From: Oculina patagonica
Lineage: Eukaryota
Length of the DNA stretch: 64,000 bases
Direction: 5' to 3'
Assembly (NCBI RefSeq): GCF_052425735.1
Contig: NC_135762.1
Location: forward strand, 12,834,001 to 12,898,000
The notes beneath the pieces were generated by a model. That model saw only the letters and a program-made list of their open reading frames with translations. It was not told where the DNA came from and searched no databases. Below, in pieces: positions 14,900 through 45,046 of the stretch (positions within the stretch are counted from its first letter, which is position 1; the number at the start of each line of letters is the position of its first letter). The translations under genes and the position numbers were made by a program.

Positions 14900-15165
14900 C
14901 AGGCGTGTTGGCCTTATGATGAGTGCACTGGACTCCGGTCTCGAGCCCTGGTGAAGGTCACTGCGCTGTATTCTTCGGAAAGATACTTTACTCGAATGTT
15001 GCCATTCTTCAGCTCGGATTATATATGAGTGTGGAATATCATCCTATCTACATGTAGGGGATAAGGAGGAATAGAAGTACTTCTTGTCGCTTCATACTAC
15101 TACAACCATAGATAAGCGCCAGCGTGATGGGCCACTAGTTCGAACGTAGACGTTAAACCTTTCAA
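14900..15165 (+). mobile_element. Degenerate tRNA-derived SINE (paralogue at ~45487-45750; a related copy at ~24355-24570)
   Basis: The GGTGGCCTAGTGGTTAGTGCACTGGACTCC head is best preserved in the 45487 copy. It is followed by a GGGCCACTAGGCTCG..AGAC tail. Confidence 0.55.
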
Positions 15166-16669
15166 GTTCGACATTTTCATGACGCGCCTTGCCCGCTTCC
15201 AAGGATAAGATCTGAAATGGTGTGAAACGTGCCTTAAATTAGTGAATAATGATAGTGATTGCACACATCTTTATATAATAACAGCAGTGTATCTAAATAT
15301 TTCTATACACTGTTCGAAATAGAAAAATTCTAAACAGCGTTTGACTGTATATTTTTGACGGCAAATACTATATTTTATATTTTTATTTTTTATTTTTATT
15401 TAATTTCATTGTATTTTTAGCTCCCCGGCTACGTTTTTTGTTCCTTTTGGAGGGAGGAGGGTAAGGGGCGGGAATAACGATTAAGAAATTCATTTGAAGT
15501 AAAACATTTTCGCGCCCTTTTCTTTATTCTCTGTCAGAATTATTTATAGCGACAATCTAATCTTAAAATAACAGGGTAGATACAAGCTGACAAACTGCAT
15601 GAAATAATCCTGAGTAAAATAAACCAAACAGCCTTGTTGCAGTTTTATTAACATTAAATAGAAAAAAGAAATCTCGATCTCTGATACACACATCTGAATC
15701 ACAATTAACGTAATCATAATATATTAATACTCTTTATTGTGGTGTGACACTTTCGATAGTCTCTTCGAACTACTCTACAATCTCTAGAAGCACTGTTGAC
15801 AAAAAAAAGAAGAAGAAAAGGTTGCTACAAAAAAGCGAGTCGCTAGAAGAGAAAGGGAATAGAGTATATTTCAGCCTTGGTATGATAATATGAACTTATA
15901 TGATTAAAAATAATAGATTAAAATCATTAATTAATAAATAATCTATTAATTAAAAAGATATATTTTTAGATAAAACGGCTTCACTGTTTTTATTTGTTTC
16001 AACATCTATTCCATGGAACAATTAGTTGGAACAGTTGAATCTGTAATTGACAATCCTCGAATCCTTCTCTGATCAAACTTGTCAAATTTGACCAATTTCC
16101 ATGTTCACATGATAAGCGAATTTAACAAGATTAACGAGACTCAGGTGGAAAAATCATGGACCTTACGACTTAATTTATGACTACGTAGTCAAGTATTAAG
16201 CAGTCAAATCAATTTTAACGATTTTGACCAATTTTTAATTATCGCATAAGGATTAGCAAAAAGCATTCGGACGCGATTCCTTTTTCATGATAGGTAAAAC
16301 AATTTTCATGATCTTGCGTGAAAAATAGATCTTAACCGCAGCTATGCGTTAAAAATCGATAAAATCATGAAAATTGATTATGTCGATTGATACATTTTGA
16401 GGGGGTGAATAGCTTTGTGGAACAACGGATTTAAGAATGAGCCCGGATTGCGGTTTTTTGAGATAAACTGAGCAAATCGCGGATAAGCTGAGAATTTTTG
16501 CGCGGATCCCGGACTCTTCATGCGAGGAAGCTCTGATCGTGGATACTAGTAAAAGGAAGTTCGGATCACTTTGGTCGATCTTCGAGCAAATGAATATGTT
16601 GACCCGTTTGTTCTTAAAAACTGGTGGGTCAGCAGATAGCCGCAGGTTTTGACTCCTGTATGTATGAAA

Positions 16670-18152
16670 ACTTCAACTGCATATCGTAAACATCACAGCT
16701 GTGAAACTACCTTGATCACCCTGGTCGAGGCATGGAAGAGGGCAAGGGACGAGAATCTTGTTGTTAACATTCTTTCCACTGACATGTAAAAGGCGTTTGA
16801 CTCCCTACACCCACCACTGCTGTTAAGTCCTGGACGGACTTATACAACTCCTGAAAAGCTACCTTAGTGACAGATACAATCGTGTCAAAATGGGCAACCA
16901 AGTCAGTTCGAACAGGTTGGTGAATCGAGGCTGTCCCCAGGGCTCTGCCCTGGGGCCGTTACTATGGAACATTTTTCAGAACGACCTTCCCTTGTGCATA
17001 GCAACCAGACCATCTATGTACGCTGACGATCATCAAATTTACCACAGTGGTCACGATCTAGTGGAGGTTACATCCAAGCTTAGTGAAAGTGCGGATCAGG
17101 CAACAAAGTGGTACGAGTCAAACTTGCTGGCCGGAAACCTAAAGAAATATCAGACGTTGAACATCGGCTGCAGCAAGACAACTGACTCAGGCACTAGTGC
17201 AGTGATCTAAACTAACAATCAGAAAATTGAGACCGCTGATACTCTTAAACTTTTAGGGGTAACTATTGACTCCAGACTGAATTTTTCGGAACACGTTAGC
17301 TCAGCCTGCATAAAGGCAAGTCAGAGAATCGGCGTACTAATGCGACTAAGGAACTTAATCCCCACTAAGGCCAAACTTCAGTTATACAAGTCAGCTGTAC
17401 TTTTACTTTCACTTTATCCAAGTTGCCATTTCACTTTACATTTATCCACATCTATCATTTAGACATATTTGAGCCTGCAGTGGGCAGGACATGAGTCACA
17501 CATGAGAACCTAGTATATGACCTTGCTCACAACGAGTCTCCCATAGCTCAGTGGTTAGAGCGTCCAACCGGTATTCTGGAAGGTCTTGGGTTCGACTCTC
17601 GTTAATTGGGGGAACTCGGAAAAATCTTTTTTCCGAGTATTCAACTTGAGAACGCTTATTCATTTACTTGTACTGTCACACCTTACTTATTGTCACCTAG
17701 TGTGGCACTTTTGCAGAGCTAGCGATGCACGCAAACTTGAACGACTACAGGAAAGGGGCTTGAGGGCCGTTTACAAGAACAAGCATGCTGGTTATACTGA
17801 GCTACTGGAGAGAGCCAAGTTGCCAACACTAGCAAACAGGCGTTTACAGGACATATGTATTCTCATGTATAAAGTTAAACATAGATTATGTCCTAATAGC
17901 ATCTGTAACATTTTTAACGAGCATACTTCCACATATAACCTGAGGCAATCAGATTTTTCTACTTCTAGATACAACACTGTTACTTATTGAAAGCACTCTT
18001 TGCATTATGTAGGATCCAAACTATGGGGCAAACTTTCTACGGCTGACAGATCAGCCAAGACACTGCAGGCTTTTACAAACTGTATTCGAAAAAGGGATAT
18101 AACTCGCTTAATGGACACCGGCTGTAAGGGCTGCATCCTATGCTGCACATAA
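16670..18152 (+). pseudogene. 5'-truncated, decayed non-LTR retrotransposon (CR1/L2-group) reverse transcriptase
   Basis: STAYRKHHSCETTL, DM*KAFDSL, GCPQGSALGPLLWNIF and YADD motifs, with in-frame stops. It is interrupted by a SINE and absent from the paralogous segment near 47750. Confidence 0.88.
17400..17670 (+). mobile_element. tRNA-head repeat inserted in the LINE
   Basis: A box TAGCTCAGTGGTTAGAGC and B box GGTTCGACTC. Same family as 63140-63330. Confidence 0.65.
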
Positions 18153-18160
18153 TGCCTCTC

Positions 18161-19387
18161 GAGAGGGTCCTGAAGGGGTAAAATGGGAACTGGGATTTGC
18201 CTATTTTGACTGGGATTTGCCTATTTTTTCACTGGGAAAATGGGATTTAGGTCACTGGGACTGGGATTCAGAAACAAAAAATGGGAATGGGAAGCGTGTC
18301 AGTACATGACTAAACCAGCATATTTTTGCGCTCTATAATGTTATGTTCTTAAAGTCCGGCACTGAATAGTTAAAACGCTGAAAACAAAACGACCGCACTG
18401 CACGAGTGTCCATCAAGTCTCGATTAATTTTTGTGTAAGTGAAGAAGTTACTCAGCGGAACAGCTATGACTGAGGATCGGCACAAATGGAATATTTAAAA
18501 GAAGTGACAGCAAGTTGTGTCAGTCAGGGTAGTGGTAGGTATGGGATAAAAACTTGATAGCTTTAGTTAAAGCTACAAAAAATTTCTATTATTCTCTTAT
18601 TATTATTATTCTATTATTAACTAGCAGATCATGATTTTGGGTAGTCCAGTCCGTGAACTATCCCTTCTGCGACCCAGGTGCGAAAAGAAAGTCCAGGATA
18701 ACTTGCATGTGCATGCTTTTAAAAACAAACCAATGAAAAAGGACAGAGACGTGTGGTGTTTCTTACATGTAACGTGTGCGTTAGGGTAAAAATAGTTTGC
18801 TAAAATGAAAAATTCAACTATGCGACTAAAGCGCGCGATCTGCAAGAAAAAATATTGTAACCTTTGTCTTAAGCCGTAATTAAATAAATATGTACTAAAT
18901 CCACAAATACTAAATTTTTGAATTTCTCATCTGTGCGCGTGCGTGTCCAAAGGTGCTGTGGAATATGGTTTATATAACCAGATTGATTGCAAGGCTGGTA
19001 CTACGGGAGGAAGGCAAGATTTATTGGCCAATATTTCAACTAGCAGAGCTAGTTTTTTTCAGGGCCAGTACTATAATCTAAGGAAAATAACGTCTCTAAA
19101 ATTTGAATTCCAGTGCAAGTAGCTCTGGACTCGCTCTTCCTGCGCCTGGGTTCAATCCCTATATAGGGCACCGAAGGGAAAGTTCAGGGAGTGTACTACA
19201 TTTAGGACAATAAAAATCCACACAGATATAATGTGCTTGAGACCAGATTTGCCGCACACTGGGAATTTCACTGCTGGGACTGGGATTTAGACAAAAAATA
19301 GGCTGGGAAATGGGATTTGGGCAAAATTTGGGCTGGGAAATGGGATTTGGTACCCCCCCCCCCCCCCCCCCCCTTCAGGACCCTCTC
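18161..19387. mobile_element. Non-autonomous DNA transposon in the LINE 3' end
   Basis: TIR GAGAGGGTCCTGAAGGG...CCCTTCAGGACCCTCTC, subterminal (TGGGATTT/CTGGGAAA) repeats, and TC on both flanks. Confidence 0.7.
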
Positions 19388-25083: not shown

Positions 25084-28000
25084 ATGAAGGCTATTGACAC
25101 ATTCTTCAAGAGGAGACCCGTGAGGCTACAAGAAGCTGGGTCAGCTGAAACTAAAATCAAGTCCAGTCATGATGCAACCAAGGTTAGTTTGGTTATTGGT
25201 GGGTTGTCAAATTCGTTTGTGACTCAAACTAAGATTTTTAATCCATCAACATGTCTGAATACATGTATTCTTGCTAATGTTCAATCATTGGAAAGATAAA
25301 TACATGTACCAGAAATTGATCTTGAGATGTGGTCCTCTCAGGTTTTAATATAAATGTATTCTAAAAACAAACTTGCACAAGTTCTGCTAGTGTAATTTGA
25401 TGTATTTTACTTTTAGGATTTTGCAGCTAAATTCACTGACCTGGACAAGCTGTACTTGGCTTTGGCTGAAGTTGGTAAAGGTTACCACTTTGGTACATTT
25501 TGCTACAGTCTCAACATTACCAGCTTGAGTGCTTTAGAGAATTATAATAGTAAAGACAGCACCGTATTGGTTCCTGATGAAATCGATAGGATAAAAAAGA
25601 AACTTAAAAGATCACGCTTCAATTTTGAAGACCTTGCTCAGGTAGGTACCAAATGAATGCAAAATAAATGTGTGATCACATGTGTAATCACACATTACTT
25701 TTTGCATAGGAACTGTAGGTGAACAAGTAAAAAGATCATTATATTTAGTTAATACCAAGGCAAAGTACATGTACTTTTTACATAACGATGCTTATCCTCG
25801 GTGTAAAGACCAGTGACCTAAAACAAAGGACTACTAAGACAACAAAGAACCTTGAAACAATATAGATCAGGGAAACGGAAGCTCCAAAACAAAGAAAAAA
25901 TTTACAAGTTCTTTTTACATAGTTAAACCCCATAATTATTGTGCATTAATTTCAATCACATGCAATCAACTGAGGCGCAAAGAATGATTTGGCTCAATAT
26001 TGTCTACCAAAAATATTCCTGTGGCCATTTTCTTCCTAAGGGTACCTACATGTATTACTTTCCTTTTGGAAGTTGACGAGAAGTCTTTGGACGATTTCCA
26101 ACTTGACTCGAAGTTTTCCGAAGAATTCCGAAGTTGACTCAACACTTACGAAGATTTCCAAAGGTGATCCAAGACTTGTTGAGTTGAAACAAATTCTTCC
26201 GAAGATTTCCCCGGGTTGGCCTGAAAACTAAGCAAGGTTTTTGGAGTTTACTCGAAGTATTCTAAAGACGAACTAAGAAGCAGTAACATTTACTGTTCCA
26301 AACGGTCTTGAATGATATAAAGTATGGCTATATATTTGTAATTTTGTTGAGTATACTGTATTAAAAAAATCTCACGACCTTCTCTAACAATTCGTGATTA
26401 ATAGGTATGAGTGATGTTGTGAAAGTTCTCAAGATTACACGAGCCTTTGCACAATTAATTTCAAACACGACAGCTATAATCATTTCTTCAGCACACGGTA
26501 CATTACTTCTCAGTCGTTTTCTGATTCGTGGAGGCATCGAGGTCGAATTGTAAGGGCGCTGGGCTTGAAATTTAGAGATCATGGGATAAATTATGTTTTG
26601 TCCAGTTAGTTGGTGTTGTTCTCGGTAGTCCTTGTATCACCCATAAATGTAATAAAAACCATAAATGTAATACCAACCATAAATGTAATAAAAATGGACC
26701 ATAAATGTAATACTAACCATAAATGTAATAACTTTTAACCACAAATGTAATAAATCCACTAACCATAAATGTAATGAAATTTGCCCATAAATGTAATAAA
26801 CTGAACAACCATAAATGTAATAAGGCTTAACCATAAATGTAATAAACTGGCTACGACTTCCAAGTAAGGGGCCACAAGTGATAATATAAATGAGACAGGC
26901 CTAACGCGACTCCCGCTGGTTGCTGAATGTTACCCTTCGATCTGTAAACGGAGGATTTAATTAACGCTCTCTTGAGCCATTTCAATGATGAACTTTATGC
27001 CATTGTGTTTGCTAGCTCTGTGGCATATTCGTTAGGTTTATTGGCTCCTGTTTGTTCAGAGATTCTTAATAGCCTTTAAAGGAATGTTGTAGTCTACAGT
27101 AGCATCGGATCAGTAGATTTCTAACTGTCAACAGTGGCAGTTAGTTCGTATGATAACGTTTCGTTACCACGGTTGTGAGGGTCTAAGATCCGATTCTTTT
27201 AAAGGCTTATGCAGTCTCTAAGCATTGCGAGCGATGGTTTCTTTGATGTTAAGCTCCCCTTAGTTTGAGTGGTTGTGATTTGTGCTCTGGGAGCTATAAC
27301 ACTTTACCTCCATTGTTTTTTATCTGTTTTGTTGGTTACTTGCATCCAGCAAATAAATTCAATCTATAGCAGTTTAATCACTGCATTTGAAGTCTCTAGG
27401 ATGCTGCAACGATGTCTCTTGGCAAATGCTTTATCTTAAGCAAGACTCGAGTTTCGGTCCTTCAGTGGACCTCATCAGTTGCTCCTTTATGTTGAAGTCT
27501 CATCGAATGATTTGAAATCATTCGATTTGCCTTTTTTGTACTTATGTATCTGCAGGATCGAAAATTCTGTTTTTTGATTGGCCCACTTAACTGGACCAAT
27601 TGTGTTAATGTAGTTTCGATCCGTGCTTAAGTGTGTTTGTTTAGAAGGCTTTTTTTTTTTCGTATTTTTGACCGTTAAAGGTCAGTTCTGATGCTAAAAA
27701 GTGGTTCTTATTTAGCCGTGCGAGAGTAATGTTCCAGTTAATGAAGAAAGGCTTCATTTGGTATATAATGCACAGCGTTCGTTTGACTATAGCATAGATT
27801 TTTTGCGATCAAGATAATCTCGTGCAACACAGCGGAACGGAGCACTGTCAAAAAAAGGTCACAAGCGATAATATAAAATGAGACAGGCCTAACGCGACTC
27901 TCGCTGGTTGCTGAATGTTTGTTTCTTAAAGGGGTCACAAAGAGCTTGAGCCAGGCCTTTAGGGGTATAATCGAATAGTCAATTTCTCGAAAAGTTTGTG

Positions 28001-30250
28001 GCCCCTTACTTGGAAGTCGTAGCCAGTTTATTACATTTATGGTTAAGCCTTATTACATTTATGGTTGTTCAGTTTATTACATTTATGGGCAAATTTCATT
28101 ACATTTATGGTTAGTGGATTTATTACATTTGTGGTTAAAAGTTATTACATTTATGGTTAGTATTACATTTATGGTCAATTTTTATTACATTTATGGTTGG
28201 TATTACATTTATGGTTTTTATTACATTTATGGGTGATACAGTTGTTTTAATTTCTTTTTTTTTTTTTTCATTTTTTTTTTTATTGCAACACAAAGAACAC
28301 TACTTACAAAACAAAAACATACACTAGTTACAATACTACTTACAAAACAATACTTAAACTACACTACTTACTATACAATACTTTCATAAACTACAGTTTT
28401 TTCACTACTTTTATACAGGTTTTTTTGTACATTATTTGCTTTATAATACAAGCTTACACATTAGTAACAATACACAACAATACAGAAATAACAAAAATAT
28501 CCTGAGTTTAATTCCTAGTTCCGTTTTACACACTGTCAGGAGGGGCAGACCAGTTAAAATTGGTCTGCCTCCTGACAGTTGGAACATTTACCATGTTTAG
28601 ATTATTTACATTATGTGTTTCTGTCAATGTTTGTGTATGAATGTTGGTCCTGAAAAGTCCCATTCGGGGAGTGGTCAATTAAGATATAGTATTTCAAAAA
28701 TAGATGAGAACTTTAAATGAAGCGAGCCAAATGTGTAGAAAAGAAGTGAGAAAGTAATGGTCTCTCATTTTATCTTTTTCAGAAATACAAGCAAACTAAT
28801 ATTGTTAAAGAGTGTAAAGTCAAACGCATACCAATGATCCCAAAGAAAGATGTAACTGTGACGAGGAACATAGCACTAGGAGAAAACCCAGCGACAGGAT
28901 ATGTGTGTGAAGCCCAGTGGACTAAACCTGATGACACTAAGGTTGGTCTCTACAGTCATTTTGCACTTGAATAGCATTATTTGTTTGCATTTGTTTTATT
29001 TGTTTTTTTTTTTATTTTCAGGAAAAAGTGTGTCTTAGATATGAAGTAGGTGATAGAGAAGAATTCCTACATGAGGCAGAAATGGCAAATCTACTTTGTC
29101 ACCAAAACGTCCTTGCTATCCATGGCGTGGTCATTGCCAGTTCGTATGCACCTATGTTGGCTTTAGTAAGTTATTAATTAAGCTACTTGTTAACCTCGCC
29201 TTCATTCCTTATCTCCGTTAGTGGAGTCATTAATTAATCACTTGGAAGAATTGTCATGATAGAATTAGAATGTATGACTTCGGTCATATTATCGAATGCC
29301 GGAATACCTGGAACAAGTCAAGAAGAAACATTGTTAACAGTAGAGGGTGGATATGCTTGCGTATGGTGGGATTTTCTGAAAAACGTTGCTCGGGTTTAAG
29401 ATTTAATGTAATAACGTCAACTTTAACTTCAGTTCCTGCACAAAATGCACCAGATTACAGCTTTTTCCACTTAATAGATTATTTGCAACAAATTTGGGAT
29501 GTGTGCTTCGGTTCTTGCATTTCATCCTTATTCTTGACTTTTTGTGGGCTCGTTTTTTTTTAGACTATTTTGCTTGTTAAAGTAAAATAGTAAGAATAAA
29601 CTCTCAAGGGAATGTTTTAATTTCTCAAGGGAATACTTTTCGCTGTTGGTGATAAAAACGTTACTCAAAGGAATGCGAACACTTCCGATCCCGAACTATT
29701 ATCTATTGAAAGCGAGATGTATAAATAAAGTTCGTTTTTTCTTGTTTGAGGAATCATTGTTTATAATAATTTCCCTATGTTGTTACCCACAATTATTTCC
29801 CCTTTTTACGTCTTCTTATATTTCTTTCCATGTTTCACGCAAAATAGTTGGTAGATCTCCAATAGATCTTTGAACATGGGATCACGGAAGTAATAAAAGC
29901 TCAAGCGCAGTTTTAGGTACTTGATGGTAAACAGCCTGTGAACAAGATCTTTAGCTCACTCAGGTCGCATCATTACTTTTCGAGCTTAACCTCCAAGGAA
30001 ATTTTTCATAGAATGAAATAAATATGAAGGTAGCTACATGTCACACATTAACAAAGGAAGCGATTATAGCCATCAAATGAAAGTATAATAACTACGTCAA
30101 AGGCGATAAAAAGTAAATAAGTATCGCTAAATAAGTAAGTATATATTGCTTTTGTGTATGGAACTAATTGTGACATCATAGAGATAAATGAATCTTTATT
30201 CAATCAATCAATCAGTCAATCAATCGATTGATTCATCCATCCATCCATCC

Positions 30251-30290
<40 letters not shown>

Positions 30291-33200
30291 ATGAATCGAT
30301 GGTGTGAATCGATAAATCACCGGATCCTCATTTGTCCCAGTAATATTACAGAGGTTCTATATTGTCCCATATGAATTGAGAACTCCCAACAAACCCGTTC
30401 GGGCTCTCAATTTTTGCCCATTCAGCTTAAATAACTGCATGCATGGTGTATGTTCTTTTTCTTCATTGTCAAGGTGGTGGAGTTTGCGAAGCATGGACAT
30501 GTTATAGAATTAGAGCAACATCACACTGTTGAAAGACTATGGAAATATACAATCCAAGCTGCTACTGCTTTGGAACACCTAGAACAGAAGAAAGTCATTC
30601 ACAAGTCCGTCGAAGGGTTTAACTGGTTCGTTGTTGCAGATTACCAGGTAAGTTCAACTTGAGATCTGTTTCGTAGACTCACCATGTTGTTTGCCGCCGG
30701 TAAAACACAACAGTCGGTACCCAGCCGGTAAGATGAGTCAAAATAGAAATGACGAGTAAAAACGTACACCGATACTAGGTACTTCAGTAAAATAAGGTCC
30801 ATTAAGAGATCAGTTATCTCATTTTTCTTTTTTCCAAAATGCTGTCTTTCTACCGATTTTTTCATCATTCGTACAGAGCCTGTTATACCGGTTTTGTGGA
30901 GTTCAAATTTGGTGAGATATTTGCAGTCAGTTCGCGCGTCATTTGTACTTTCTGAAGCAGAATTGAACAACAACAACAACAACAGTAATGATAATTTCGT
31001 GCAAAGGAACTTTAAAGTGACGTTCATGAAATGTAACTTGCGTTCCTAAAATGCAAAAAGGTATAATCTGAAATTTTATTATCTTTTTATCGCCAGTTGA
31101 AGCTTGGAGGCCTTGCATATTGTGGATTTGAGAGTCAAGTGTTAGTATGTCGTTTTTTTATTTATTTTATGTATTTATTTATTGTTTTTTTATGTTGATG
31201 ATACATTGTACATGTAATCTTGATGCCAGCGCCCACGCGGGTATGTCTGCCAACCTTTACTATCTCTCCTGGCCTTGTGCCACAGCTAATTCTTTTATCG
31301 AATGTTGGTTTTTCTAGCTTGGTTTATTTTATCTGGGTATGAATCTTAGCCCTTGCCCAACTCTCTTGTCATTCTCATCTCTGCTAGTGAACTGATTTGC
31401 GCCAAGATTGAGTGAGCGACTTGACTTGGGTAATTTCTATTTTAGTCAAATTTATGTGAGATGAACACTGAACTGTTAAATCGAGGGACGTTCTTTCCTG
31501 TTACGTAGCGCTGTTTCTTGAGCATTTAGGTCACTTAAAGGAAATCGCTAGCCGGCTTAAGTATTGCTACAACCAACAGCGATCAACCTTTTGAAACTGT
31601 GCTGGCGTTGATGCTGTTGTGATGACTTTGCTTGCTAGATTTTGAAAAAAAGCCAACATGGCGGCACGTTCTGCAATTGGGCTCCTCAACATGTAATTTT
31701 TTACCAGTTATCGACGAGTTTGAAGAAGGTCATGATGCCTACCTGGCAACTAATGATATTCGCCCCACAATGACTGAAACTCTGAAGAATTACTAGCGCC
31801 AGAAGAGGCCACTGGTCAACGAATATTTGCCTTCAGAGTGAAGTAATTATGTGATGCTATTTGTTCACTGGGCTGCTTGGGGCCGAGTTCTAGCATAGTG
31901 TGCAATACTGCAATACAAATTACAGAGTGTCGAAGATAGGAGGAGCCAAGTCCCTTTTTTAGTACACCTTGGTGTTTAACTTTGCAGGGGAAACCAAGAT
32001 GCCCATTACATGAAGAAGGTCGTGGTTTACCAGTTTGCCAAACTATTTGCTGGCACATTTGCCAATTATTTACGACAGCGTGCAGACGTTTCATCAATTC
32101 GGGTGAGTTATGATTGTGATGTTTATGATTACGATGTCGATGATGATGATTATGATTTATTATTTTATTAATCATATCTATAACAAATTTCTCGATTTTG
32201 ATTGGTTCTACGCACACCTACTTGTCGTGTAATTGGCGCGTGATCATGTCAGTATCCAATTACAGGTATCTAATTTGAACAACTTCAAATTAGATACCTG
32301 TAATTGGACAGCTACGCCATTCGCTCGTCAATCACGCGCATATAAATGGTTCTTTCTTGCCATTTTCCCACTGTTTGTACAACCAGTTGACTTTACCATT
32401 GCCTTTTTCACACTTAAAAATAGTCTCAAAGACTTCCTAACCTCGAATTTTGTTATTTATACGATTAATTAGTAATTGGACCTCGTGTCGTGTAATTCAG
32501 AGAGTAATCGTGCTCGTAATTTCAAATCGACCTCGCGCGCTCGGCCGATTTTAAAATTACTCGCCCGATTACTCCCTGAATTATACTCCACTCCGTTCAA
32601 TTACTTTTACTTATTTTTGCATATATCAATGCTGGGTGTTCCCCTTGCAAACGCGTTATGTCGCAAACAGAATGGGTTTTGGTAAGAATCCTGGTAACGT
32701 GCTTGCTGTGTGTGAAAACAAAAATTAATCAATAATATTCTGTGGATAGCCCTACGAAGAATGTAGGGGACCGCGTAAGCAAACTGAAGAAGGTCAAGAC
32801 CATATCGCAAATTTCTGTTCTTCACCTTCTAAAGAAAATTATGCACGAGGTAAAAAAAAGCAATGTTCGTAACCAGAACGATCATACAAAACAACTCTTT
32901 GTTTGCTTGAAGAAACGGAGATCAATAAATCTTTCATTTGAGCTAAATGACAACCTCTAACACATCTTTTATCGTTTTTTATTTCATATTTTATAAAAAA
33001 GAGACATGTTTGTAAATGGCAAATGAGTTTGTAGCAATAAGTACGTCCTCCCTCCCGCACGCACACACACACACACATGCGCGACCAAAATGATTTCAGT
33101 AACTACTGCCAATCCACGGAGAGGATTCGTATTGACGTTTTTTAGTGTTCTGAAGGGATTGTTAGAAGATAATTGATGTAATAAAAGGTCATAGAAATCC

Positions 33201-36200
33201 ATTGGCCACATGAAGAGATACGTTATCGCAGATTGAGCATGTTATATTTTTCGCTCGTTCGAAACTCATTCATTTTCACTTGCTCTTTCTTTTAGGCAGC
33301 TTCAAAATCACAAGATGAAGTACCGGTTTTTGGTTCCCTTTGTCCTACGCATTTTTACGACGTATTCAGGCGTTGTTTGCAAATGAATCCAGATGAAAGG
33401 CCCTCGTTTTCGGAAATCAGGCGATCTCTTGTTGCAGAGGTAAAATTGCTTTTATGTTATCATTAAGATTTATGGTGTCAACGCTAAATGTATATATCTG
33501 AACGAATTCGCAGCAACCTGGCCGCAAAGTTTTCGCTTGCGAGTTCAAGCCCATCTAGCAGCCTTAACTTGTTGGGAAGGGGGGGGGGGGGGGGGGGGAG
33601 AGGGGGAGGGGGTGCTTAATGTCAGGAATGGTGTGGTGGTCTTGCCCTGGGTCTGGAGTATCCGCTGGTGCCTAGCCGTCAAAAGCTGGGGAAAAGGGAA
33701 GATGCCACTTTAGACTACTGGACCTAGCTAGGCTTGGGCTTGGGCTCTATTGAGCATGTCTGTGTTAATTTTGAATGCCTTGTGTTGATTGTGAATATTT
33801 TGAATAACATTGCTAGGGGGTTCCCTGTATAGAAGTCACCCTGCTGTTGTAGCAGGTGTTACCTGGGCTCATGACGTCCCAATCTCTAGCCAGAGGGGAA
33901 GTCAAAGGACTTGTAGCAGTCTGGAGTATTTTGGGAGATGGGTGTCCAGGTTCTTGAAATATTACTCAGATATATATTGCTAATAACAACACGTACGAAG
34001 GAGTCATTTACCGGTTAACCCAGTACAAAACAGAGTAAGGCTCGCTGCGGTATAAGGAGAGGGAAAATAGGCTCTCAACTCTTAAAATCCACAAGTTAAG
34101 AGACTGGAATTGTGCAGAATGGTTTTTGCGTATTTGTTGCCAAATGGTAGGGAAAGTCTTCAGAAATACGTCCTGAAATAAAACAACAACAACAAAAGTA
34201 CACCTTTATGTTCCCTTTAGTGTCTGGGTCCGATTGCTTAAAGTATCTTAAGATTAAGTTGGATTAGCCTGTGTACAGCCGTCACGCTCCCCTTAAAAAA
34301 ATTCTCTTTCGCGATTATTTTGAGTGAAGGGGAATTTGGTGCAACCATTCCCTGTGTTCCCCAAGGTCGCCTTGCACACTATTGGGAATAAATCAGCCAA
34401 AGGTGGATTGAAGTGTATGGGAAACAATGCTGAAAAAATCATTAGAAACCCCGAGATCAGTTGAGTACAGAAAAGTATCATACAATTTAAGTCTGTTGTC
34501 AGAAACCATTTTTGGAGGAAGGTAACGTTACATAACGTAATGAATTTATTGTCAATGGCTGGTTTTGCGTCTTATTCAAGAGTAATCGAAATTTAATAAA
34601 GTAGTGTGTTCAGCCTCAGTTATTCTAGTGTTCCTTTTATAACAGGAGCAACCTTTGAAAGTGAGGGTTGTTAGCAGCTTCAGTGCCGCGTCAGAAGGGT
34701 TTCTAAGCTGTGATGCTGGAGAGCTTATAACTGTTATCTCCAAGGACCGTCATAGGTACGTTATGAAAGAATGATTGTTAAGAAAGTATGACTACGTATC
34801 GCGGAATATTATATAAACGCTTCATAGTCTCAGTGGACACTTAAGGACGCCTAAGGAGGGAAAAGTGGCGAAAGATAAAAGTTTTTTTCCGCGTGTATCG
34901 CAAGGATTTCACACGGCATTACATGTACTGCATGGTGATTGGCTTACGCAGACGGTATTTTTAGTGCAGAATGCACTATTGTGATGGTTTGGTGGGCTGT
35001 CGTCTGCTAAACCCCTAAAGCTTTAAAGCGCTAAAGCACTATAGTGTAAACTTTTGATCGCCAATTAATTAATTAATGTCAACTAATTAATTATTCCTTG
35101 TGGAGGGGGTGGCGGTGGGGAGCACCTGACCATACACCCCAGGTAAACTCGTGGAACATATCTACGTTACTTTCATATGAAGATTTCAAGGGTATATATT
35201 TGTTTCAGAAAACTCTTTGTTCTCTTTGTGGTGCTATTTTTTCTAGAGGAAAGTACTTTGCGCCAAACGCATGCGCAGATTAGTCTATTTACGATACTTA
35301 TAATTGAAGAGCTCAAAGGTCTATATTTGTTTAGAAAGCACTATACTCTCCTTGTGGTACTATTTTTTCTGGAACAAAATACTTTGGCTAAACGCATGCT
35401 CAGATTAATATGCGTCACGAACATCGCATGTTTCTTCCTGCGGAAGGATTCCTGTGGACTCAGTGGCGCAAAGTAAAAACCGCAAATTAATTGAATTAGA
35501 CACTAATGCGCTTACGGCAGTTCATGTGAAATAATTCTTGATATGGCAACGCTGTGATCTAGCATCTACAGTGTAGTATGATTCAGAAAAACCATTTCTT
35601 GCATTAATCGATAATATCTGATCTGTGTTTTAATCGATGTTGCCCTGTTTGCAGAAAATAAATCAGGTTACCATGTCAACACGCTACGTACGTTTTTGAC
35701 AAAAACAAAAGAATCATGTTACACATGTTTTCTACAAAAACAAAAGTATCATGTTACAAAAGTATCTCGTTTGCTGTTTCAATATCAAACTGAAATTCAA
35801 ACTAACGAAAATTAAAGTATCAGGGACGTGTTTAGAAATCTTGTATCAAATCCTCACGATGTGTGCTTTTCAATGCGGTAGGATTCTTGTAGAATCCGCG
35901 GCATTAATTTAATTAGACTTTTAGGCATCACAGCGGTCTAAGTGAAAAACAAAAGTATGATGTTACATCCGTCACTTCCTTTCCTTTGATTTGTTCTCCA
36001 TCGCTTAAACTAACTTCTATATTATTTTGTAAAACCTTTGCCTGAGAGGGGCTTCGTGTGGAAGCGAGACAACTCTCTAGTGTTCGAACACGCTTTCGTG
36101 ATGGTTCCGACATTTCTTGAAAGAAATCTTCACACTTCGTGCTTCTCAGCTTCGTGCTTGAGTAAGCATGTGACATGTTCACCAGACCGTGGTGAGAGCA

Positions 36201-39200
36201 TGACCTGGCGCACAACATGCTTTAGCGACAATTTCGGAGAAAAGCCGCAATTTCGAACATTTTATGCTTTGTAATTCATAATTTGTGCTCTGCTCGTTGA
36301 TTTGCCATATTGCATTCTGCACTTCCCTTTGAGTCTCTGAGTTATTTAAGTTCACGTCGTCTTGGTTGAAATAAACATCACTTTTCCTCACTGGACACCG
36401 AGTCTCAAAGTTGTTGTGTACCAAATCCAATAACATCAGCTACTCTGCAAGATCGATTGGACACTGTTTACGACTTTCGTTTTAGGATTTCGGAATTCTG
36501 GGCGTCGGCAAGCAACTCAGACGATTAAAATTCAGTCCTTTTGAGTATTATCTGTCAAGAAAACGTTTTCAGTGAATTGCACTAATTATATGCCCTTTTG
36601 CTGTATTAGCACGGTAAGATTCTTTTCGGTATGCTTCGCGGTCATGGTTCGCAGGCGCATACGCTCTACGACGTAAGGTAAAGGTTAATGTAGGTTTACA
36701 TCTTGGATATTGGACATCCATACTATGGTCAAAACAAGAAATACGCTGACCAGTATCATATAGCCATATAGTCAATCTCATATAGTCACGGGCTCAGGTG
36801 TGAAACTCATCGAAGTTGCGTGTTTTTGAAGTTGACCGTTGACCAGGTAATGGTTTTCCATTGGATCGCTGGCTCAAGCCGATTCGCTCAAGTTCGTTTC
36901 GTTTAAGTCGGGCAACGTAAATAATCTGAGAGCTCCGCTTTTAGCCTTGGCTTAATCTATTTAATACTCTGTTGTCCTATTCCCATTAATGTACGGTACT
37001 TAATGTACAAGCAAAGGATCACGTCGATGAAATGACACAAGATTGGTCAATTTCTGATATACTTACTTGCAGGGATGACAAGAATGCCTGGTTTGGTGAA
37101 ACAGAAGACCGAAAAATTGGATTTTTCAAGAGCGAGCATGTAGAGGAACTACTGGACGAGAATATTGATGGTAGGTGCAGGGCAATAGAGTACCTTTTCT
37201 CTCGAGATGGTTAAAACTGCACTGTTAAGTTTTTACGACCAGGTAAATATCCTTAATTATTTTGGTTTTCAGATACAGCTATACCACCAGAGATTCGTGC
37301 ACGAGGCCCCAGAGCCGAACTTGCTTTTCAAAATGCCCTGCGGAATGGAAAAGTGAACGTGTACCGTGGTCGCATTATGTTTCTTGGGCAGGCCCGTGCA
37401 GGGAAAACGAGCCTGAAGAAATCACTTCTTGGCATCCCGTTCAACCCTGAAGAAGAGAGTACCGTAGGAGTCGAAGTTGACCCATCCAAGTGTGAAGTGG
37501 ATGTTGAACAAGTTAGCAACTGGCAGCGCACGAAACAAAGGAAGCTTGATGTCTCTGAGTTTGCTGACGACATAGCAAGGATAATCGCTAAAGACTTAAC
37601 AGAAACAAGTTTAGTCGAAAAAAGCATCGATGACGCTGATTCGAACTTGGAGCAGGTAATAAGTTAGCTTCTAATGCCACTTTTAAACTCCATGGAAACA
37701 GTTTTTAACCTCATTCAGACAGGTATTTTTATGGGGGGGGAAGGGCTTTTTCACAACCAGGGGGTCAGGCGATTTTTGCCCACCACATGTACGTACCTCT
37801 ATGGGTATTGAAGCTATGATGATAGGGGTGTATAGTATCTCCAAAACAAACTGGTCGGTTGACATGATGACGTTTTGATGTCGTCATGGCTTTTGAACAG
37901 CCGCCATCTTGGACGGCATGCAAATCTGATGTTCTTGACTTTTTGAAATTAGAAAACGACTTAAAGTAAGACAAATTTGGAGAACATGCCTGTTAAAACG
38001 TAATTTTTTTGATAATATCAAGTTCGGTTTAAAAGATAATGTCAAAAGTACACTTGTAAGGTCTTTTAATACAAAAAAAGGTTTACACTCCTTATAAAAG
38101 CGTGAACACTAAAAAATATGTCTGGAATGTTTGTGTTTAGCCAATCACATGCGAGAACTTCAGACCGCAGAAACCACAAACAGTAAATGGGTTTCCATCG
38201 GTCACGGAGCAACTTTAGTTCTTATTTTGTTTCAGGATACACGCTCTGTCTTTTTTAAGAATTTAAAGAACTGCTATTCTTTCGTATCGAGGGCCACATC
38301 CAGAACATGGTTTCAGGGATTTTTGAAAGAAAAAAAGGACGGTTTCTCTAGCGACGATATACGACATGGTTTAGTGCATGCAGTATGTTGTAGACATGTC
38401 TAGACATAAGATGTAAACGCGATAAACCGAATATAAAATACAAAATTGTGGAGTTTTCGTTACTGATTGTAAATCTTTTCGGTAGAACAAGGGATTCGAT
38501 TTATTTCGGCAAACGATTTCAACCCTTAGGCAATTAGAGGTTCCGTGATCGTAAGACTGCAAACTGCAAAGGCTCCAACGAAAATTATTCAAAATGTTGG
38601 CGTGATTGGTGCAAAATAAACACCTCAATCGCTCAATCGTTTGATTTTCGCTTTTCCTTCCCGCTATCGTTTCGCTGTTATCGAAAAAACAAACCTTCCT
38701 TCTATCAGTGTTTAGGTCTGCTACAATAGTTGGGGTGAGATAAAAACCGGAAAATGCAAGCTTATCTCAGTACAAATTGTAACATGCCATCAGGCGAACG
38801 GTAACTGCAGATACGAATTCGTTACAATTTTTGAAAATTGGCGGCAACTGGGGCAAATCGTAGCGTCGGGCGCATCGGTTTTTCAATTTTTTCTATAAAA
38901 AAATCACTCAAACCTATTCTTCAGTGGAGCAGTGAATGTTCTCAAAAAGGAAGGAATTACAATTAGTGTGTTTACTTGTAAATTGGAGCGAAACGAGAAC
39001 CAAATATTGTTCCGTGACCGATGGAAACCCATGTGGTTTCTGCGGTCTGAAGTTCTCGCATGTGATTGGTTAAAAGACAAAGAACATTCCAGACATATTT
39101 TAAGTGTTCACGGTTTAATAAGAAGCGGTGTAAATGAGCAACACGTTCTGTAACAGTTTTGCTTATTGTCTCTTTTACTTCCTATATTTCCAATTAGGGG

Positions 39201-42200
39201 AACAGGGATGAGGTGGATGCTGGCGGTCCGAAGGAATTAGAGATTTCACTGGACATAGCCAAGCCAATACAAGAAACAAAACAGGAGAATGAGGCATCAG
39301 TTGGAGACCCTACCGCCACTGCGCTAGTAAGAAGCGAACCAGCAGAGCTAGATATTCAACTGGGTATTGATACCACTGCAGTTTTGCCGAATGACGTCAC
39401 AGATTTGGTTGTGCAATACTTGCAAGATCTGAAGTTGGAGGACAACATAAGAACAAAGGAAGCAATTTTAACTCTGTGGGATTTTGCCGGGCAGCACCTT
39501 TATTATGCATCCCATTCTGTTTTCCTCTCCCCACGAGCTATCTACGCCTTGGTGTATAACCTTAGCAGAGATCTGAATGCTCCAGCAGAACCTTGTGTCA
39601 GACAGGGCATTCACGACATTGTTCTGGAAAATCCAAACAGTGAGACCAATTTAGAGAGTTTGTTGACCTGGTTGGCCTCTGTTCACAGTATTCGGCCAAT
39701 AACGGATGAGGCTGCTAGTCATCAGGAAGGGAAACTAGCTTACCTCCGTCCTCCAGTGTTTATTGTAGGTACTAATGCAGATAAACCTTTTGAAGATATC
39801 AAGAAAATGGAAAAGTGCATTCAGAAGAGTATTACGGGAAAGGCGTACGAGAAGCATGTAATTAGGCCATTCTTTGCTGTTGATAACACAAGATCGTTTA
39901 GTGACGATGGGGTTCAAGCACTTCAGAAAAGGGTCATGGAGGTGTTGAAACAGGAGCCGTACATGGGTGAAGAGGTGCCAATAAGGTACTTTGCTTTAGA
40001 TTCCAATTCCAGGTGTCAAATAGTAACAAGAACGTCAGTTGAATAAGTCGATAAAAAAATTAAATGCTTAAGAAAAACCATTGCCAACTTGTGTCTGTTT
40101 GCGTTTCAACAACTTTCTCGTTAACTCCCTGTAGTCCTTGAACTGTCTAACTGAAAAACAGAAGTCGTCAAAATGACCTGACCCTTGATTGACTTGCTAC
40201 CTAGAATGCAAAGATGTGAAAGTGATTTGTTATTATAACATGTACAATTATTCAGCTCAAAAGTCTTTTCAAAAGGGCAAGCAGCAAACGAGTGTATTTT
40301 TTTGTTTGTTTTCCTTAGGTGGTTTACCTTCGAAAAAGTCGTCGAGGCTTTAGTAGCAAAGGAAACCTATCACATGGATCTTGATCAGCTCCTAGCTGTC
40401 ACAAGACGAGTCTGCCGCATAGACGACGGGGAAGAATTAACAGCCATGTTGAATTTTTATCATGATCTCGGAGTGATCGTAAAGCATGGCCATACTGTTG
40501 TGCTGCAGGCTCAATTGTTGATTGACCTTTTCAAACAACTCATTACTGTGCGACCCTTTGATGAGGTGGTAAGCAGAGATTTCCCTATGAACTCTATATT
40601 ACTTCTGGGCTCGGAAGAACTTGCCATATGATTACTCATAAAGTTCAGTGTCATTTTGGCCAGGCCTAAATCCCAGCTTTTTTATAGACCATCGGGAATC
40701 TTAAAACGAAATTTTCATACAGCAACATTTTCACCTTTCTCCTTCCATTCTCTCCTATTTAATTTCATTTGTCCAAAACGGGACGTCACTCTACATAAAA
40801 GCAACATTGCCTATCTTTAAGCACAGTGTAGGCTCTAGTTTACTCAAATGTGCACTAAATTCTTACGAAAATGCCTCTGAAAGACTTGATTCCCACTCGG
40901 TTACAAGGCGGAGGTATACTTGAAGGCCGTTTATCCACCGCTTAATATCGAATATCTCGTTCGCCTTTCAAGCAATCCAAACGAATCTACAGTGTATTTT
41001 TTTTTGCGGTGTTTTGAATATTTTTGGCGATATTTGGGAGGAAACAGTTTTTCTCAAAGGACTAGTAAAATATAGAGAAATAAGAAATATTCAAGATTAT
41101 ATGTGATTTGAAAATTAGAATTTGAAGTTAAAAATTAGTTAGTGGACACCCAACCAGTCCCCTGACAACCTGGAGCGCTCTTGGTGGTGTTCTTTATTGT
41201 ATCCCTTTTTCAAAACCTCTTAAAATTTCATTCAAATTCACTTTTACCCCCGCCTCAAGTGAGGTGGCCCATGAAAACAAAAAACTCACTCTACGGTACT
41301 TTTCTTGTCATATCTTTATTCAGAATCCTCTGTACTCAGAATGCTGGCTGGAACTCGAAGAAAGTGGTATTCTCAGGATGACTCTTGTCGATCACGTTTT
41401 CGCAGATTTCATTCAGAAAGGTCTTTCTAAGGAGGACGTTTTGGATACGATGGAGCTCTATGGGTTAATCGCCAAATTTTCCTTTGTTCCCGCGGTTGGC
41501 GAGCAGGAACAAAGATATTTTGTGCCTGCCCAGCTTCGATCATCCCCTTCAGGTCTGTGCGAGATAAAGCCCTCTAACAGCGATCCATGCCCACTGTATC
41601 TCCATTTCCTCGATGGATTTGTCCCTCATGGACTATTTCCTCAGCTGCTGTCAAGAAGTATACGCTGGTGTTCTGAACGCGGTCCCAAACAAGCTCCTAA
41701 TTTATACCAAAATGGGGCAAGGCTTTTCATTGGCAAGCAGACCATTTACAATCTGATTCTTATCTGCAGAAAGAGATTCATCAAGATCATTTTGAAGCAA
41801 AGACGTCCTTCTTCAGCACCTCCATTAACTGCATCAGTGGAAATGGCACGCGACGTTCGCCTCTTTCTGGAAGATACCCTACAAGACTTGTCACACGAGT
41901 TGTCCTGGTTACGTAACCTCCGGTATGAACTGTGTGTTGCTTGCACCAGTTGTTTAAAGGAAAGTAAAGAGTGCATCAAGCACAGAGAAGTCTGCTGTGC
42001 TCACGATGACTGTCTACATCTTCTCCGTGTGCTTCCTGAAGAACAGCTGATATGCCCGAAGAGCTTTAGCGATGATACAGTTGAAGTTCGTGGATTGGAG
42101 AAATGGTTCCAGGGCCATAAAACGGAGGTACTAATTCTTTCAAATTTTCTTTAACTTAAGTTGTAAATCATTATGTAAGGTGAAGGGTAAAGTCTGTGTT

Positions 42201-45046
42201 TGAACCTAGTGGTCCATCAGGACAGAGCTTATCGCGGTTTCCGTAGCATTAAAAGACTAGCAGTATTCTTAATCCTCTCTGGACGAGATACTAGTCCATC
42301 GCAGGGTTACCCCCCAGCATCACATTCGCCGGTACTCATTTATACACCTGGGTGGAGAGAGGGCATTATGAGAGTAAAGTACCTTGCCCAGGGACACAAC
42401 GATTATTCAGTTGCAGTTTAATCCTGAATTTCACCCAGTATCGTCTGGTAGAGATGAGTTTTTTTTTTTATTTCCATCAACATTCTTGGTATCCTCAGTG
42501 CTTGGTCTTGCAGGACATGCTATATTTCAAGTCTAATTATTTAACATCTTTGTCTAAACCTTAACATTCAACAGCTGTCTTTTCAAGCTATTTTTTTTAT
42601 TTACTTTCTCTTTTTTTAACATAGATTGAAGAACAGAGAGTGGCTTTTCTGGCTCCTGAAGGTAAGAACAATGTGTTCTTGTTAATCATAAGAGCATGTG
42701 ATCTATGAGCAATATACAATGCGGCCCCTATACTTGGAAAATTTGGAGTAATTGCAAAATATCATCCGCGATGTATCAGCATGGTCATCAAAATCAAGTT
42801 CACGCTACTTTTTTACGTAGTTATAAATGCGTTATTGGCTCTGTCGAGCTATACTAAGAACTAACTAAGAAGAAGAATCAAAGAAAGAGGAATAAAACAA
42901 TGGAAACAAGTTATTTCAGCGAAGCGTCGCGTGACGACCCAAAAGTGGCTGCGTAGGAGACTACAGGACCTCCCATTGGCAAATAATCGTTCGCATGCTT
43001 CATGCTTGTATAGGACTAAGTGAACGTCAGTTGTTCAGCTGACAGCTGTAAGAGAGATTCTCCAACGAAAAATGTTTGCTTTTGTTCCGGTTTGCAGTTT
43101 GAGTAAGTTTTAAATTCTACTAAATTTAGGTCTATCTAATTTTTAAGGCGCCCATTTCAACAATGCACCGTTACTGAATATACCTTAAGGAGTCTTTGTA
43201 ATGTACAGGATTGATCATGTCAACAATTGTTATTGTTGCAGCTTCCATAGCTTTGGAACAACCACCATCCAAATCCGGCACACCTTCAACCGACGATCTT
43301 CTCCTTCTTGCCTTTGAGCTGGGCACCTCATGGAAGATGCTTGGCCGAACCCTGGCTCTTCCTGAGCCAGTGCTGGAGCAGATTGAAGTGGATAACCCTC
43401 ACCTATCTGAGAGATGCTATGGCGTGTTAAGACGGTGGACAGAAGTTTTTGGGTCAGCGGCAACTTACGAGTCACTGGCGCGAGCATTGCAGCATCCCAT
43501 TGTGGGAAAAGGAGAACTTGCTGTCAAGTACTGTGACGTTTGCAGAGATGCATATCAAGGTAGATAGTTAAAAACTCCAGCCGACCTTAGAATTCTGATG
43601 AAAAGGGTTCAACAAATGATTACCAATTTTCATCATAATCGATGCCTTTACCCTGTTTTCTAATACCCGAGCAGGCAGGATAGTGGGATTGCCTCCTGTG
43701 TCCCGCAGTAAAAATGTTGGTCTTAAAGCCATATAATAAATTCTTTACTGACCTTGCTCTTTTTCTTTATGGCATAATTATGAAACTCATCTTAGATCTA
43801 CATCTCGATCCATTAACACGCAAAAAAGAACTTTGCCTAAATCCAAACATCTTGATTTAGCAAGCTTGGTCAATAACCCTTATATTTGATACAATTTTAG
43901 ATGTGGACACCGCACCCATCCCCTCTCAGACAGCTGATGTTTCCGGCTCGAGTTGCCCAGTTTTCCTGTCGTATCAGTGGGATTTACAAGACACAGTGAA
44001 AAGACTGAAAAGCAGGATGCAAGAGAGTGGGATTCAATGTTGGATGGACATCGGACAGATGGGCGGTGGCGATGCTCTGTTTGCAAAGATAGATGCCGGT
44101 ATTCGAGCGTGCAAGGTCAGATAAATTATTTTGTAACCCTGGCCCCTCGTTCTTTGTTTCTTTCTTCTTTGTTTTCGAAATCATAGTACGATTTCGCCCT
44201 ACAGTGAGCAGAAGCAAATGTGTCTTGTGATTGATAATTGAACGTTGTTCCCTCTGGTAAAAGAGATCAGAAACCAAGAAAACCCGGTGTACCTGTAGTT
44301 TTATTGGACCGGCTAACAGTAACATTGCAATCACGATATAACGACACTTGGGAACTAAACAAACCTAATGATTTAAGAGATATTACGTCATATGAACTCT
44401 TTAACGAAGATAGTATTAAGAACGTCGTTGTTTTACACACCTGCTACATTAATGAATCACCAGATACAACGAACCTGCTGAAAAATCAACTTCTTTTGCG
44501 ATAGAACGAACTTCGTGATCTCAAATCTCCTGGTATGACAGACTTCCCTCTATAACGAACATCCATGTATAACTAACTGGCAGATTTATCAAACCTTCGG
44601 GTATCACTAGATTTCCGGTGTAATCTCCCGGTAATCTAACTACTGATAAAACAAGATAAAAACTAAATGCAAATAGTTATATTCGACGGTTCTTTTTCAT
44701 TTCTATAAGGAAGCCCGTTAGAACGAACTCCAACTTACAGCGAACATACTGTTTGAACAAATAACAATTCTTTCTCCTTTTTGTCCTGGCATAGGTCTTC
44801 GTTTGTTGCGTAACAGAAAAATACTGCCAATCAGACGCCTGCCAAGGAGAGGCCACCTTAGCTCATAGCTTAAAGAAACCCGTCATCCCTCTGTTGTTTG
44901 AAGACATTTCCTGGCCTCCAGAAGGTCAACTCGCCTTGATCTTTACCAAGCTTCTTTACATCAAGATAACCGAGAAACACGGCACCATTCCTGATGCAGA
45001 GTTCCAACAGTTGATGAGAAAAGTGGAAGAGTTTGTGAAACCTTGA
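25084..45046 (+). CDS. ROCO-family gene copy B, apparently complete (1449 aa): SAM-like, ACK-type pseudokinase, SH3, Roc, COR, death domain, TIR
   Basis: 18 coding exons: 25084-25182, 25417-25641, 28783-28941, 29022-29165, 30474-30647, 31097-31140, 31988-32102, 33296-33439, 34646-34755, 37073-37170, 37273-37655, 39198-39985, 40319-40568, 41324-42127, 42625-42661, 43251-43559, 43901-44115, 44795-45046. They sum to 4350 nt with no internal stop. Intron phases match copy A and exon lengths match or differ by 1-2 codons. The start exon is the least certain. Confidence 0.87.
26633..28240. mobile_element. Foldback-type element with ~245-bp TIRs built of tandem ACCATAAATGTAAT motifs (intronic)
   Basis: Arms 26633-26877 and 27996-28240 are near-perfect reverse complements with TGT...ACA ends. 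There is no coding capacity inside. Confidence 0.8.
30198..30288. repeat. (TCAA)n/(TCCA)n compound microsatellite
   Basis: Direct reading. Confidence 0.9.
38086..39130. mobile_element. MITE with ~120-bp imperfect TIRs, copy B only
   Basis: TA|CAC...GTG|TA. The arms 38086-~38208 and ~39012-39130 are reverse complements. This accounts for the intron being ~1.1 kb longer than in copy A. Confidence 0.7.

Follow-up and report, generated by a model that had tools for sequence, protein, structure and literature searches.

A catalytically degenerate kinase domain in the tandem ROCO–Death–TIR genes of the coral Oculina patagonica

The 64,000-nucleotide stretch of Oculina patagonica DNA analysed here (RefSeq assembly GCF_052425735.1, contig NC_135762.1, positions 12,834,001–12,898,000; hereafter the window, whose own numbering we use unless stated otherwise) carries a tandem duplication of a multidomain gene, which self-BLAST resolves into copy A (~1–22100) and copy B (~25000–60456). 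Pfam scans of the open frames of copy B return, in order, a kinase domain (PF07714), an SH3 domain, a Roc GTPase domain split over two exons, a weak COR-A match, a Death domain and, divided between two exons, a TIR domain, and copy A shows the same order from its third kinase exon on. With the N-terminus included, the full arrangement reads weak SAM_TNK-like domain, pseudokinase, SH3, Roc, COR, Death and TIR. Here we describe the kinase-like domain of these genes, which has lost its catalytic residues in every copy and is a real, expressed and conserved pseudokinase, not a decaying relic.

Exons and transcripts of the copy B kinase domain

To define the exon limits, we combined the spliced transcript contigs of four public runs with AG/GT boundaries over window positions 28700–33600. 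The contigs on this interval are spliced and skip the GT..AG introns, and are therefore derived from RNA; the junctions E1–E2, E2–E3, E3–E4, E4–E5 and E5–E6 are all seen among them. The six exons, all on the forward strand, are as follows.

28783–28941 (+), E1: N-terminal extension, β1–β2 and Gly loop LGENPATG; placed by AG/GT, frame, the contig join to E2 and alignment to LGDGSFG of the ACK-like protein P0044
29022–29165 (+), E2: β3 VCLR (29028–29039), αC FLHEAE and β4–5; PF07714 profile positions 44–75, PDB alignment to the αC of ROR2, joint 29165 to 30474
30474–30647 (+), E3: hinge, αD, αE and catalytic loop HKS (30600–30608); PF07714 profile positions 95–135, phmmer alignment to the HRD region of NEK7, contig joints
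31097–31140 (+), E4: LKLGGLAYCGFESQ; DFG equivalent at 31100–31117 and shortened activation segment; joint 30647 to 31097, E4–E5 joint, MAFFT alignment to P0044
31988–32102 (+), E5: region after the activation segment and αF, the exon of lowest conservation by per-exon identity; joints 31140 to 31988 and 32102 to 33296, copy A counterpart at 2180–2294
33296–33439 (+), E6: αG–αI with CP...RCL...PDERPSF, the tyrosine-kinase subdomain XI signature; PF07714 profile positions 228–258, best PDB matches ABL1, PTK7 and ITK

The spliced copy B kinase domain comprises 260 residues. An earlier note on this DNA had given limits of 28783–33439, which coincide to the nucleotide with where E1 begins and E6 ends, and its motif positions (VCLR, HKS, HQS of copy A at 352–360, and a degenerate Gly loop) were likewise correct.

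B-type contigs (at least 99% alike) are present in at least runs X1 and X2. A further set of contigs, ~90% alike and with the same junctions as B, agrees with the paralogue C described below at 20 of 21 variant letters and thus represents C-type transcripts; on the same count, we rejected the possibility that these contigs are orthologues from other species. An open frame at 32750–32852 (PYEEC...) was also rejected as an exon, being used by no contig and unconserved in copy A.

Summed contig depth reaches hundreds to thousands at 29520–29683 and 32144–32635, both within kinase introns, in all four runs, and these segments are probably abundant repeat families, transcribed or multi-copy. The intron upstream of E1 holds a 245-bp inverted repeat, 99.6% identical between its arms (26633–26877 and 27996–28240, ~1.1 kb apart), which looks like the ends of a small transposon.

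Catalytic motifs in four paralogues and a homologue

A whole-genome search revealed two further copies of the gene. Copy C is found beyond the window, 43 kb downstream of B (chromosome positions 12904701–12922528, G000:C5). Copy D, with Roc-like sequence downstream, is on the same chromosome at a distance of 6 Mb (G000:C5:6855500–6862000); its kinase-like exons have open frames, with exact boundaries fixed for E2 and E3 only. A fifth match, E2-like and weak, lies 28 kb upstream of D (G000:C5:6830187–6830324) and may be a neighbour of that copy. In another genome assembly, we found a homologue, L013 (ENA ERZ25067556, ctg25991, 7861–18794), with six intact kinase exons followed by Roc and COR frames and a weak COR-A match. 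The L013 gene is far more compact, its kinase exons spanning 5.4 kb, compared with ~14 kb in A (the first two exons lying upstream of the window), 4.7 kb in B and ~18 kb in C. In line with the earlier note, which had described intact frames and splice sites, all six exons are open and bounded by AG/GT in A, B and C. The N-lobe exons E1 and E2 of copy A are intact in the flanking sequence just upstream of the window, and the remaining four lie within it.

226–399 (+), copy A E3 with HQS (352–360): PF07714 37.8 bits (cut-off 23.1), aligned under HRD of MET and ABL1
1695–1744 (+), copy A E4: LKLAGIGACRFESDIR, without the Asp of DFG; tblastn and splice sites
2180–2294 (+), copy A E5: self-BLAST conservation with copy B E5, splice sites
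4200–4337 (+), copy A E6: homology with copy B, splice sites

The PF07714 profile recognises E2, E3 and E6 of copy B with 15.3, 22.9 and 22.7 bits, and a spliced family fragment, P0043, with 59.4 bits against the same cut-off. Per-exon searches of the PDB returned ABL1, MET, EGFR, ROR2, Eph, TrkA, PTK7 and ITK, which places the domain, as judged by sequence similarity, in the tyrosine-kinase group; NEK7 was also among the best matches. As the active reference for the motif register, we used P0044, an ACK-like library protein with SAM_TNK, kinase and GTPase-binding domains, which was the best-scoring full-length active kinase among the library matches, and compared it with the coral copies both by MAFFT and by ungapped reading. 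An assignment of the domain to ACK by sequence was rejected, as the per-exon PDB searches do not favour ACK1 (13.6 bits for E3). The motifs at the three catalytic positions are as follows.

Copy A: β3 VCLR; HRD position HQS; DFG equivalent KLAGIG
Copy B: β3 VCLR; HRD position HKS; DFG equivalent KLGGLA
Copy C: β3 VCLR; HRD position HRS; DFG equivalent KLGGLA
Copy D: β3 VCLR; HRD position HMR; DFG equivalent KLGGLW
L013: β3 VCLR; HRD position HQS; DFG equivalent KLAGIG

The β3 lysine position is thus occupied by Arg in A, B, C, D and L013; this Arg stands at the ungapped Lys position, 13 residues past a conserved Trp, as in ACK. In phmmer alignments to PDB chains, HKS of B and HQS of A fall under the HRD of NEK7, MET and ABL1, and HRS and HMR align there too, so that the replacement of HRD described in the earlier note was borne out against PDB kinases; the motif register as a whole draws on P0044 and PDB kinases. 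Likewise, GLA and GIG, which the earlier note had given in place of DFG, are its ungapped equivalents, since KIGDFG of P0044 aligns over KLGGLA in B and KLAGIG in A; no Asp is found in any register, and the copy B equivalent lacks both Asp and Phe. A degenerate Gly loop is found in every copy, as in LGENPATG (B), WGPHAG (A) and LGNNPVTG (C).

The activation segment is 20–24 residues shorter than that of ACK. The earlier note had read this as a deletion of most of the activation segment/APE region, of which the shortening stands, while APE itself may remain: in the MAFFT alignment, a conserved A/G-x-C-x-x-E-S of A, B and C sits on AWCAPES of ACK, so the loss probably concerns the loop that links DFG to the P+1 loop and not APE, and an APE-like Glu may survive. 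We also considered whether GNQDAHYM of copy B is a remnant of the ACK activation-loop sequence NDDHYVM, with APE deleted; this was rejected, since GNQDAHYM is unconserved in A and C and MAFFT favours the pairing of AxCxxES with AWCAPES.

To examine whether an alternative exon might supply the missing motifs, a possibility that the earlier note had raised, we searched all six frames of 28000–34600 and found no HRD[LIVMF] or xxDFG string. A tblastn search of the same interval with the ACK-like kinase returned E2, E3 and E6 only. Together, these results indicate that no hidden exon restores catalysis.

A few features could be taken to mean that the domain is an atypical active enzyme, binding nucleotide and carrying out phosphotransfer or another reaction through relocated residues, as in WNK, CASK and SelO. 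The αC Glu (FLHEAE) and the Asn of HRDxxxxN are both kept in A–C, and the β3 Arg could pair with the αC Glu. Set against this, all three canonical catalytic residues have disappeared together with the Gly loop and a large share of the activation segment, and the D subfamily no longer has the Asn of the catalytic loop. Nor is any substitute Lys or Asp conserved: L013 has Leu for the K of TKPD and Gly for the D of ADYQ, and C has Gln for the E of HKSVE. The catalytic loop is, moreover, the most variable stretch of E3 across the family. The data fit this reading poorly, and we regard it as highly improbable.

The same losses are shared by A, B, C and D, indicating that the dead state is older than the split of the two subfamilies (~40% identity), and a non-catalytic role of the domain is well supported.

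Conservation and divergence within the family

We next consider how the domain has evolved. A profile of E3, searched against 1.84 billion representative proteins (50% representatives), retrieved ~30 family fragments, the matches being confined to fragments of one exon, short pieces of spliced sequence and multi-kinase proteins that are unrelated. A homologue search with P0043 returned eight fragments, all D-type, in protein searches that reach targets of 0.55–1.75 times the query length. Cluster look-up gave a single named relative, a 205-residue fragment from the cold-water coral Desmophyllum pertusum, which belongs to the ~30.

All 30 aligned E3 sequences have the His of HRD, 0 of 30 have Asp at the third HRD position, and 17 different triplets are found at the motif. 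The six catalytic-loop columns have entropies of 1.8–3.3 bits, compared with ~0.2 bits in αE. A variable catalytic loop beside a conserved αE is the reverse of the pattern in active kinases, and fits a fold that is kept without catalysis; the hypervariability of the loop is in keeping with a loss of catalytic constraint. The HRD His is a residue of the regulatory spine, and its invariance, along with the conserved hydrophobic core, is consistent with a retained kinase fold. Between the ~40%-identity subfamilies and the other genome, VCLRY, FLHEAE, TIQxAxALExLE, the HRD His and PDERPSF are all preserved.

The ratio of nonsynonymous to synonymous substitution rates (dN/dS, or ω) was estimated by the Nei–Gojobori method (NG86) with bootstrap 95% intervals, on three or four sequences.

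Kinase domain, A–B: dN/dS 0.46 (0.31–0.67)
Kinase domain, A–C: dN/dS 0.43 (0.30–0.63)
Kinase domain, A–L013: dN/dS 0.25 (0.16–0.38)
Kinase domain, B–C: dN/dS 0.70 (0.41–1.18)
SH3-to-TIR part, A–B: dN/dS 0.22 (0.18–0.29)

Purifying selection acts on the kinase domain, although constraint is weaker there than anywhere else in the gene, with about twice the ω of the rest. This bears on the proposal that the domain is a neutral relic without function of its own, which keeps its frame for no other reason than that a frameshift there would wreck the Roc–COR–Death–TIR part behind it. Such a relic would account for the roughly doubled ω, for a B–C interval that includes 1, and for a catalytic loop and an E5 that vary freely. 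Frame maintenance alone, on the other hand, predicts ω of ~1, while the values observed are 0.25–0.46 with upper limits of 0.38–0.67; the cores listed above would not be expected to persist between such distant subfamilies and another genome, and a Pfam kinase domain is still detectable in the sea anemone members of the family (PMC5094078). A neutral relic therefore fits the data poorly and is very unlikely. The selected pseudokinase that the earlier note had postulated agrees with these results, the catalytic residues being gone in four paralogues and the homologue from another genome, with no Asp at HRD and with dN/dS significantly below 1.

The divergence between A and B is mosaic. Their kinase exons are 72–78% identical and separated by introns that cannot be aligned, whereas from SH3 on, exons and introns alike are 84–90% identical, with the breakpoint between 4345 and 4839 in A and between 33447 and 34620 in B. 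This suggests that the 3' part may have been homogenised by gene conversion, or that the copies arose by a chimeric duplication. For the A–B pair, dN is 0.265 in the kinase domain and 0.054 downstream, a five-fold difference, and dS is 0.58 and 0.24, respectively; the higher dS and the unalignable introns of the kinase part indicate that some of its extra divergence is age. Between B and C, E1 shows 14 nonsynonymous and 1 synonymous differences and E5 shows 12 and 1 (in sum, 26 versus 2), while the other exons show the usual synonymous excess. Tested post hoc, E1 and E5 together give p 0.04 versus neutrality and 0.003 versus the other exons, but a global test for heterogeneity over exons falls short of significance (p 0.07), so that the nonsynonymous excess is a hint and not a result.

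These observations have to be weighed in connection with a sensor role, in which the dead kinase would be an integrated decoy: it would mimic a host kinase targeted by microbial effectors, and effector binding or modification would release Roc–COR to signal through Death and TIR, by analogy with plant NLRs carrying integrated kinase domains, tandem kinase proteins and ZED1/ZRK with ZAR1. The pseudokinase is indeed the fastest-evolving part of the gene in both dN and ω (0.46 versus 0.22), the substitution excess in B–C falls on the Gly-loop side (E1) and on the region after the activation segment (E5), at least three copies of the gene are arranged in tandem, and their output domains are of immune type. 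Speaking against it are an overall ω below 1, the non-significant global test and the partial contribution of age to the divergence (in the kinase part only, introns are unalignable); no effector or guardee is known, and the nearest active relatives are not pinned to one host kinase. The five-fold dN and the post hoc E1/E5 excess are thus only hints of a sensor, and we consider a decoy function unlikely, if worth keeping in mind. Its fuller form, in which the domain would be an integrated bait whose diversifying cleft senses effectors of pathogens or symbionts and fires Roc–COR-gated Death/TIR signalling, making it the animal equivalent of the integrated-decoy receptors and tandem kinase proteins of plants, seems to us doubtful.

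The comparison with ZED1/ZRK and ZAR1, which the earlier note had drawn, holds as a functional analogy, in that both systems would join a non-catalytic kinase fold to an immune signalling module, and TIR is an output domain in some plant receptors. It does not extend to descent or construction: the plant pseudokinases are of RLCK/TKL type and of unrelated origin, and ZED1, a protein in its own right, binds an NB-ARC NLR, while the coral domain is of animal tyrosine-kinase type, fused in cis, and accompanied by a Roc–COR GTPase instead of an NB-ARC NLR. Pfam scans of the open frames in the window detected no NB-ARC or NACHT domain.

Domain context, related systems and proposed role

Beyond the kinase exons, the following features of copy B were mapped, all on the forward strand.

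25417–25653 (+): SAM_TNK-like N-terminal domain, open frame, weak; aligns with family N-termini, 17 invariant columns
34643–34771 (+): first half of SH3 (open-frame limits); SH3_2 20.4 bits, profile positions 2–35
37065–37211 (+): second half of SH3 (open-frame limits); SH3_2 16.1 bits, profile positions 31–55
37257–40043 (+): Roc GTPase, two exons, 37257–37664 and 39198–40043 (open-frame limits); PF08477 30.9 and 28.7 bits, cut-off 27
40239–42151 (+): COR region, a weak COR-A match (E 0.019) and a 340-residue open frame without a Pfam match
43202–43564 (+): Death domain; PF00531 E 2.2e-10
43861–45043 (+): TIR, two exons, 43861–44121 and 44795–45043; TIR_2 E 6.6e-9 and 8e-7

The SAM_TNK assignment is weak: among five family N-termini, four match PF22931, all under the cut-off (best E 0.006), that of the window's own copy gives no match, and hhalign of the N-terminus against the ACK-like SAM yields P 0.004 with a probability of 8%. 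SH3 lies directly C-terminal to the kinase; its halves each score below the cut-off of 21.8 and jointly cover profile positions 2–55. Roc retains G1, G3 and G4-like motifs (GQARAGKTS, WDFAGQ and TNAD), and its GTP switch is apparently competent. Roc is interrupted at 39198–39400, between the P-loop exon and the DxxG exon, by a long stretch of acidic, low-complexity sequence that is conserved in both A and B. The COR-A match reaches 15.3 bits against a cut-off of 35.3, and the COR region is 93% identical in amino acids between A and B, with ω of 0.12. Downstream of the TIR exons of copy A, the open frames at 16827–17987 contain reverse-transcriptase-like sequence (GCPQGSALGPLLWN), probably a fragment of a non-long-terminal-repeat retrotransposon.

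The same domain order on a single anthozoan gene has been described as NG3 ('Novel Gene 3') in sea anemones, where Pkinase_Tyr, SH3, Roc, COR, Death and TIR follow one another in A7RN39_NEMVE and Calliactis polypus KU710368 (van der Burg et al. 2016, PMC5094078; after Poole & Weis 2014). We compared the genes by domain order. NG3 is under purifying selection with a whole-gene ω of 0.09–0.11 (PMC5094078), and that paper neither discusses the kinase competence of NG3 nor names it a pseudokinase; we found no paper that does, and the family goes unmentioned in the cnidarian and tyrosine-kinome papers that we examined. The coral genes differ from NG3 in forming a tandem array with a second, distant subfamily.

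It is the architecture that lends the coral proteins an ACK/TNK flavour: as in ACK1/TNK2 and TNK1, SH3 comes right after the kinase, and a putative SAM_TNK-type domain, whose coral match is below the cut-off, comes before it. ACK differs in having an active kinase and a CRIB/GTPase-binding region, while the coral copies are without catalytic residues, and Roc directly after SH3 leaves no room for the CRIB/GTPase-binding and Mig6-homology regions, for which no dedicated search was run. DAPK1 and LRRK1/2 likewise combine a kinase-fold domain with Roc–COR in one polypeptide, DAPK1 having an N-terminal kinase and a C-terminal death domain; these are active Ser/Thr kinases of the CAMK and TKL groups, whereas the coral domain is a tyrosine-kinase-type pseudokinase accompanied by SH3 and TIR.

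MyD88 consists of Death and TIR. IRAK2 and IRAK3, which have death domains of their own, are pseudokinases with a scaffold function in TIR signalling. In this Myddosome system, the parts are separate vertebrate proteins and the IRAKs belong to the TKL group, while the coral parts lie on one chain with Roc–COR between them. Other tyrosine-kinase-type folds that have lost catalytic residues and serve as scaffolds or regulators are PTK7/CCK4, ROR, RYK and JAK JH2, of which PTK7 is among the top PDB matches for E6; they retain a full-length activation segment and are receptors or JAKs, not ROCO proteins.

Taken together, our favoured reading, to which we assign a probability of roughly 70%, is that the domain is a true pseudokinase, incapable of phosphate transfer and kept by selection as a folded, non-catalytic N-terminal module of an anthozoan ROCO protein. 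According to our model, the pseudokinase and the flanking SAM-like and SH3 domains would form a protein-binding, regulatory platform that holds or releases the Roc–COR GTP switch, which in turn would control oligomerisation and signalling by the MyD88-like Death–TIR tail. Several points weigh against this reading: retention of the kinase fold is read from sequence conservation only, we infer both the protein-binding role and the coupling to Roc–COR, dN/dS of the young copies B and C is not significantly below 1, and the NG86 estimates are approximate at dS of ~0.6–1.0.

ROCO proteins such as LRRK2 and DAPK1 have been studied as kinase–GTPase pairs. The genes described here would represent an anthozoan-wide ROCO family in which the kinase fold has been dead since before the paralogues split and is still conserved. 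The NG3 gene family of sea anemones was already known; what is added is the pseudokinase state of its coral members, and with it the automatic annotation of these genes as 'tyrosine kinase' is put right. For cnidarian immunology, this offers the hypothesis that NG3-type proteins would signal via Roc–COR, Death and TIR, with the pseudokinase–SH3 head as an input or regulatory module. If that head proves to be a sensor, the family would be a case of convergence with the integrated-decoy receptors of plants.

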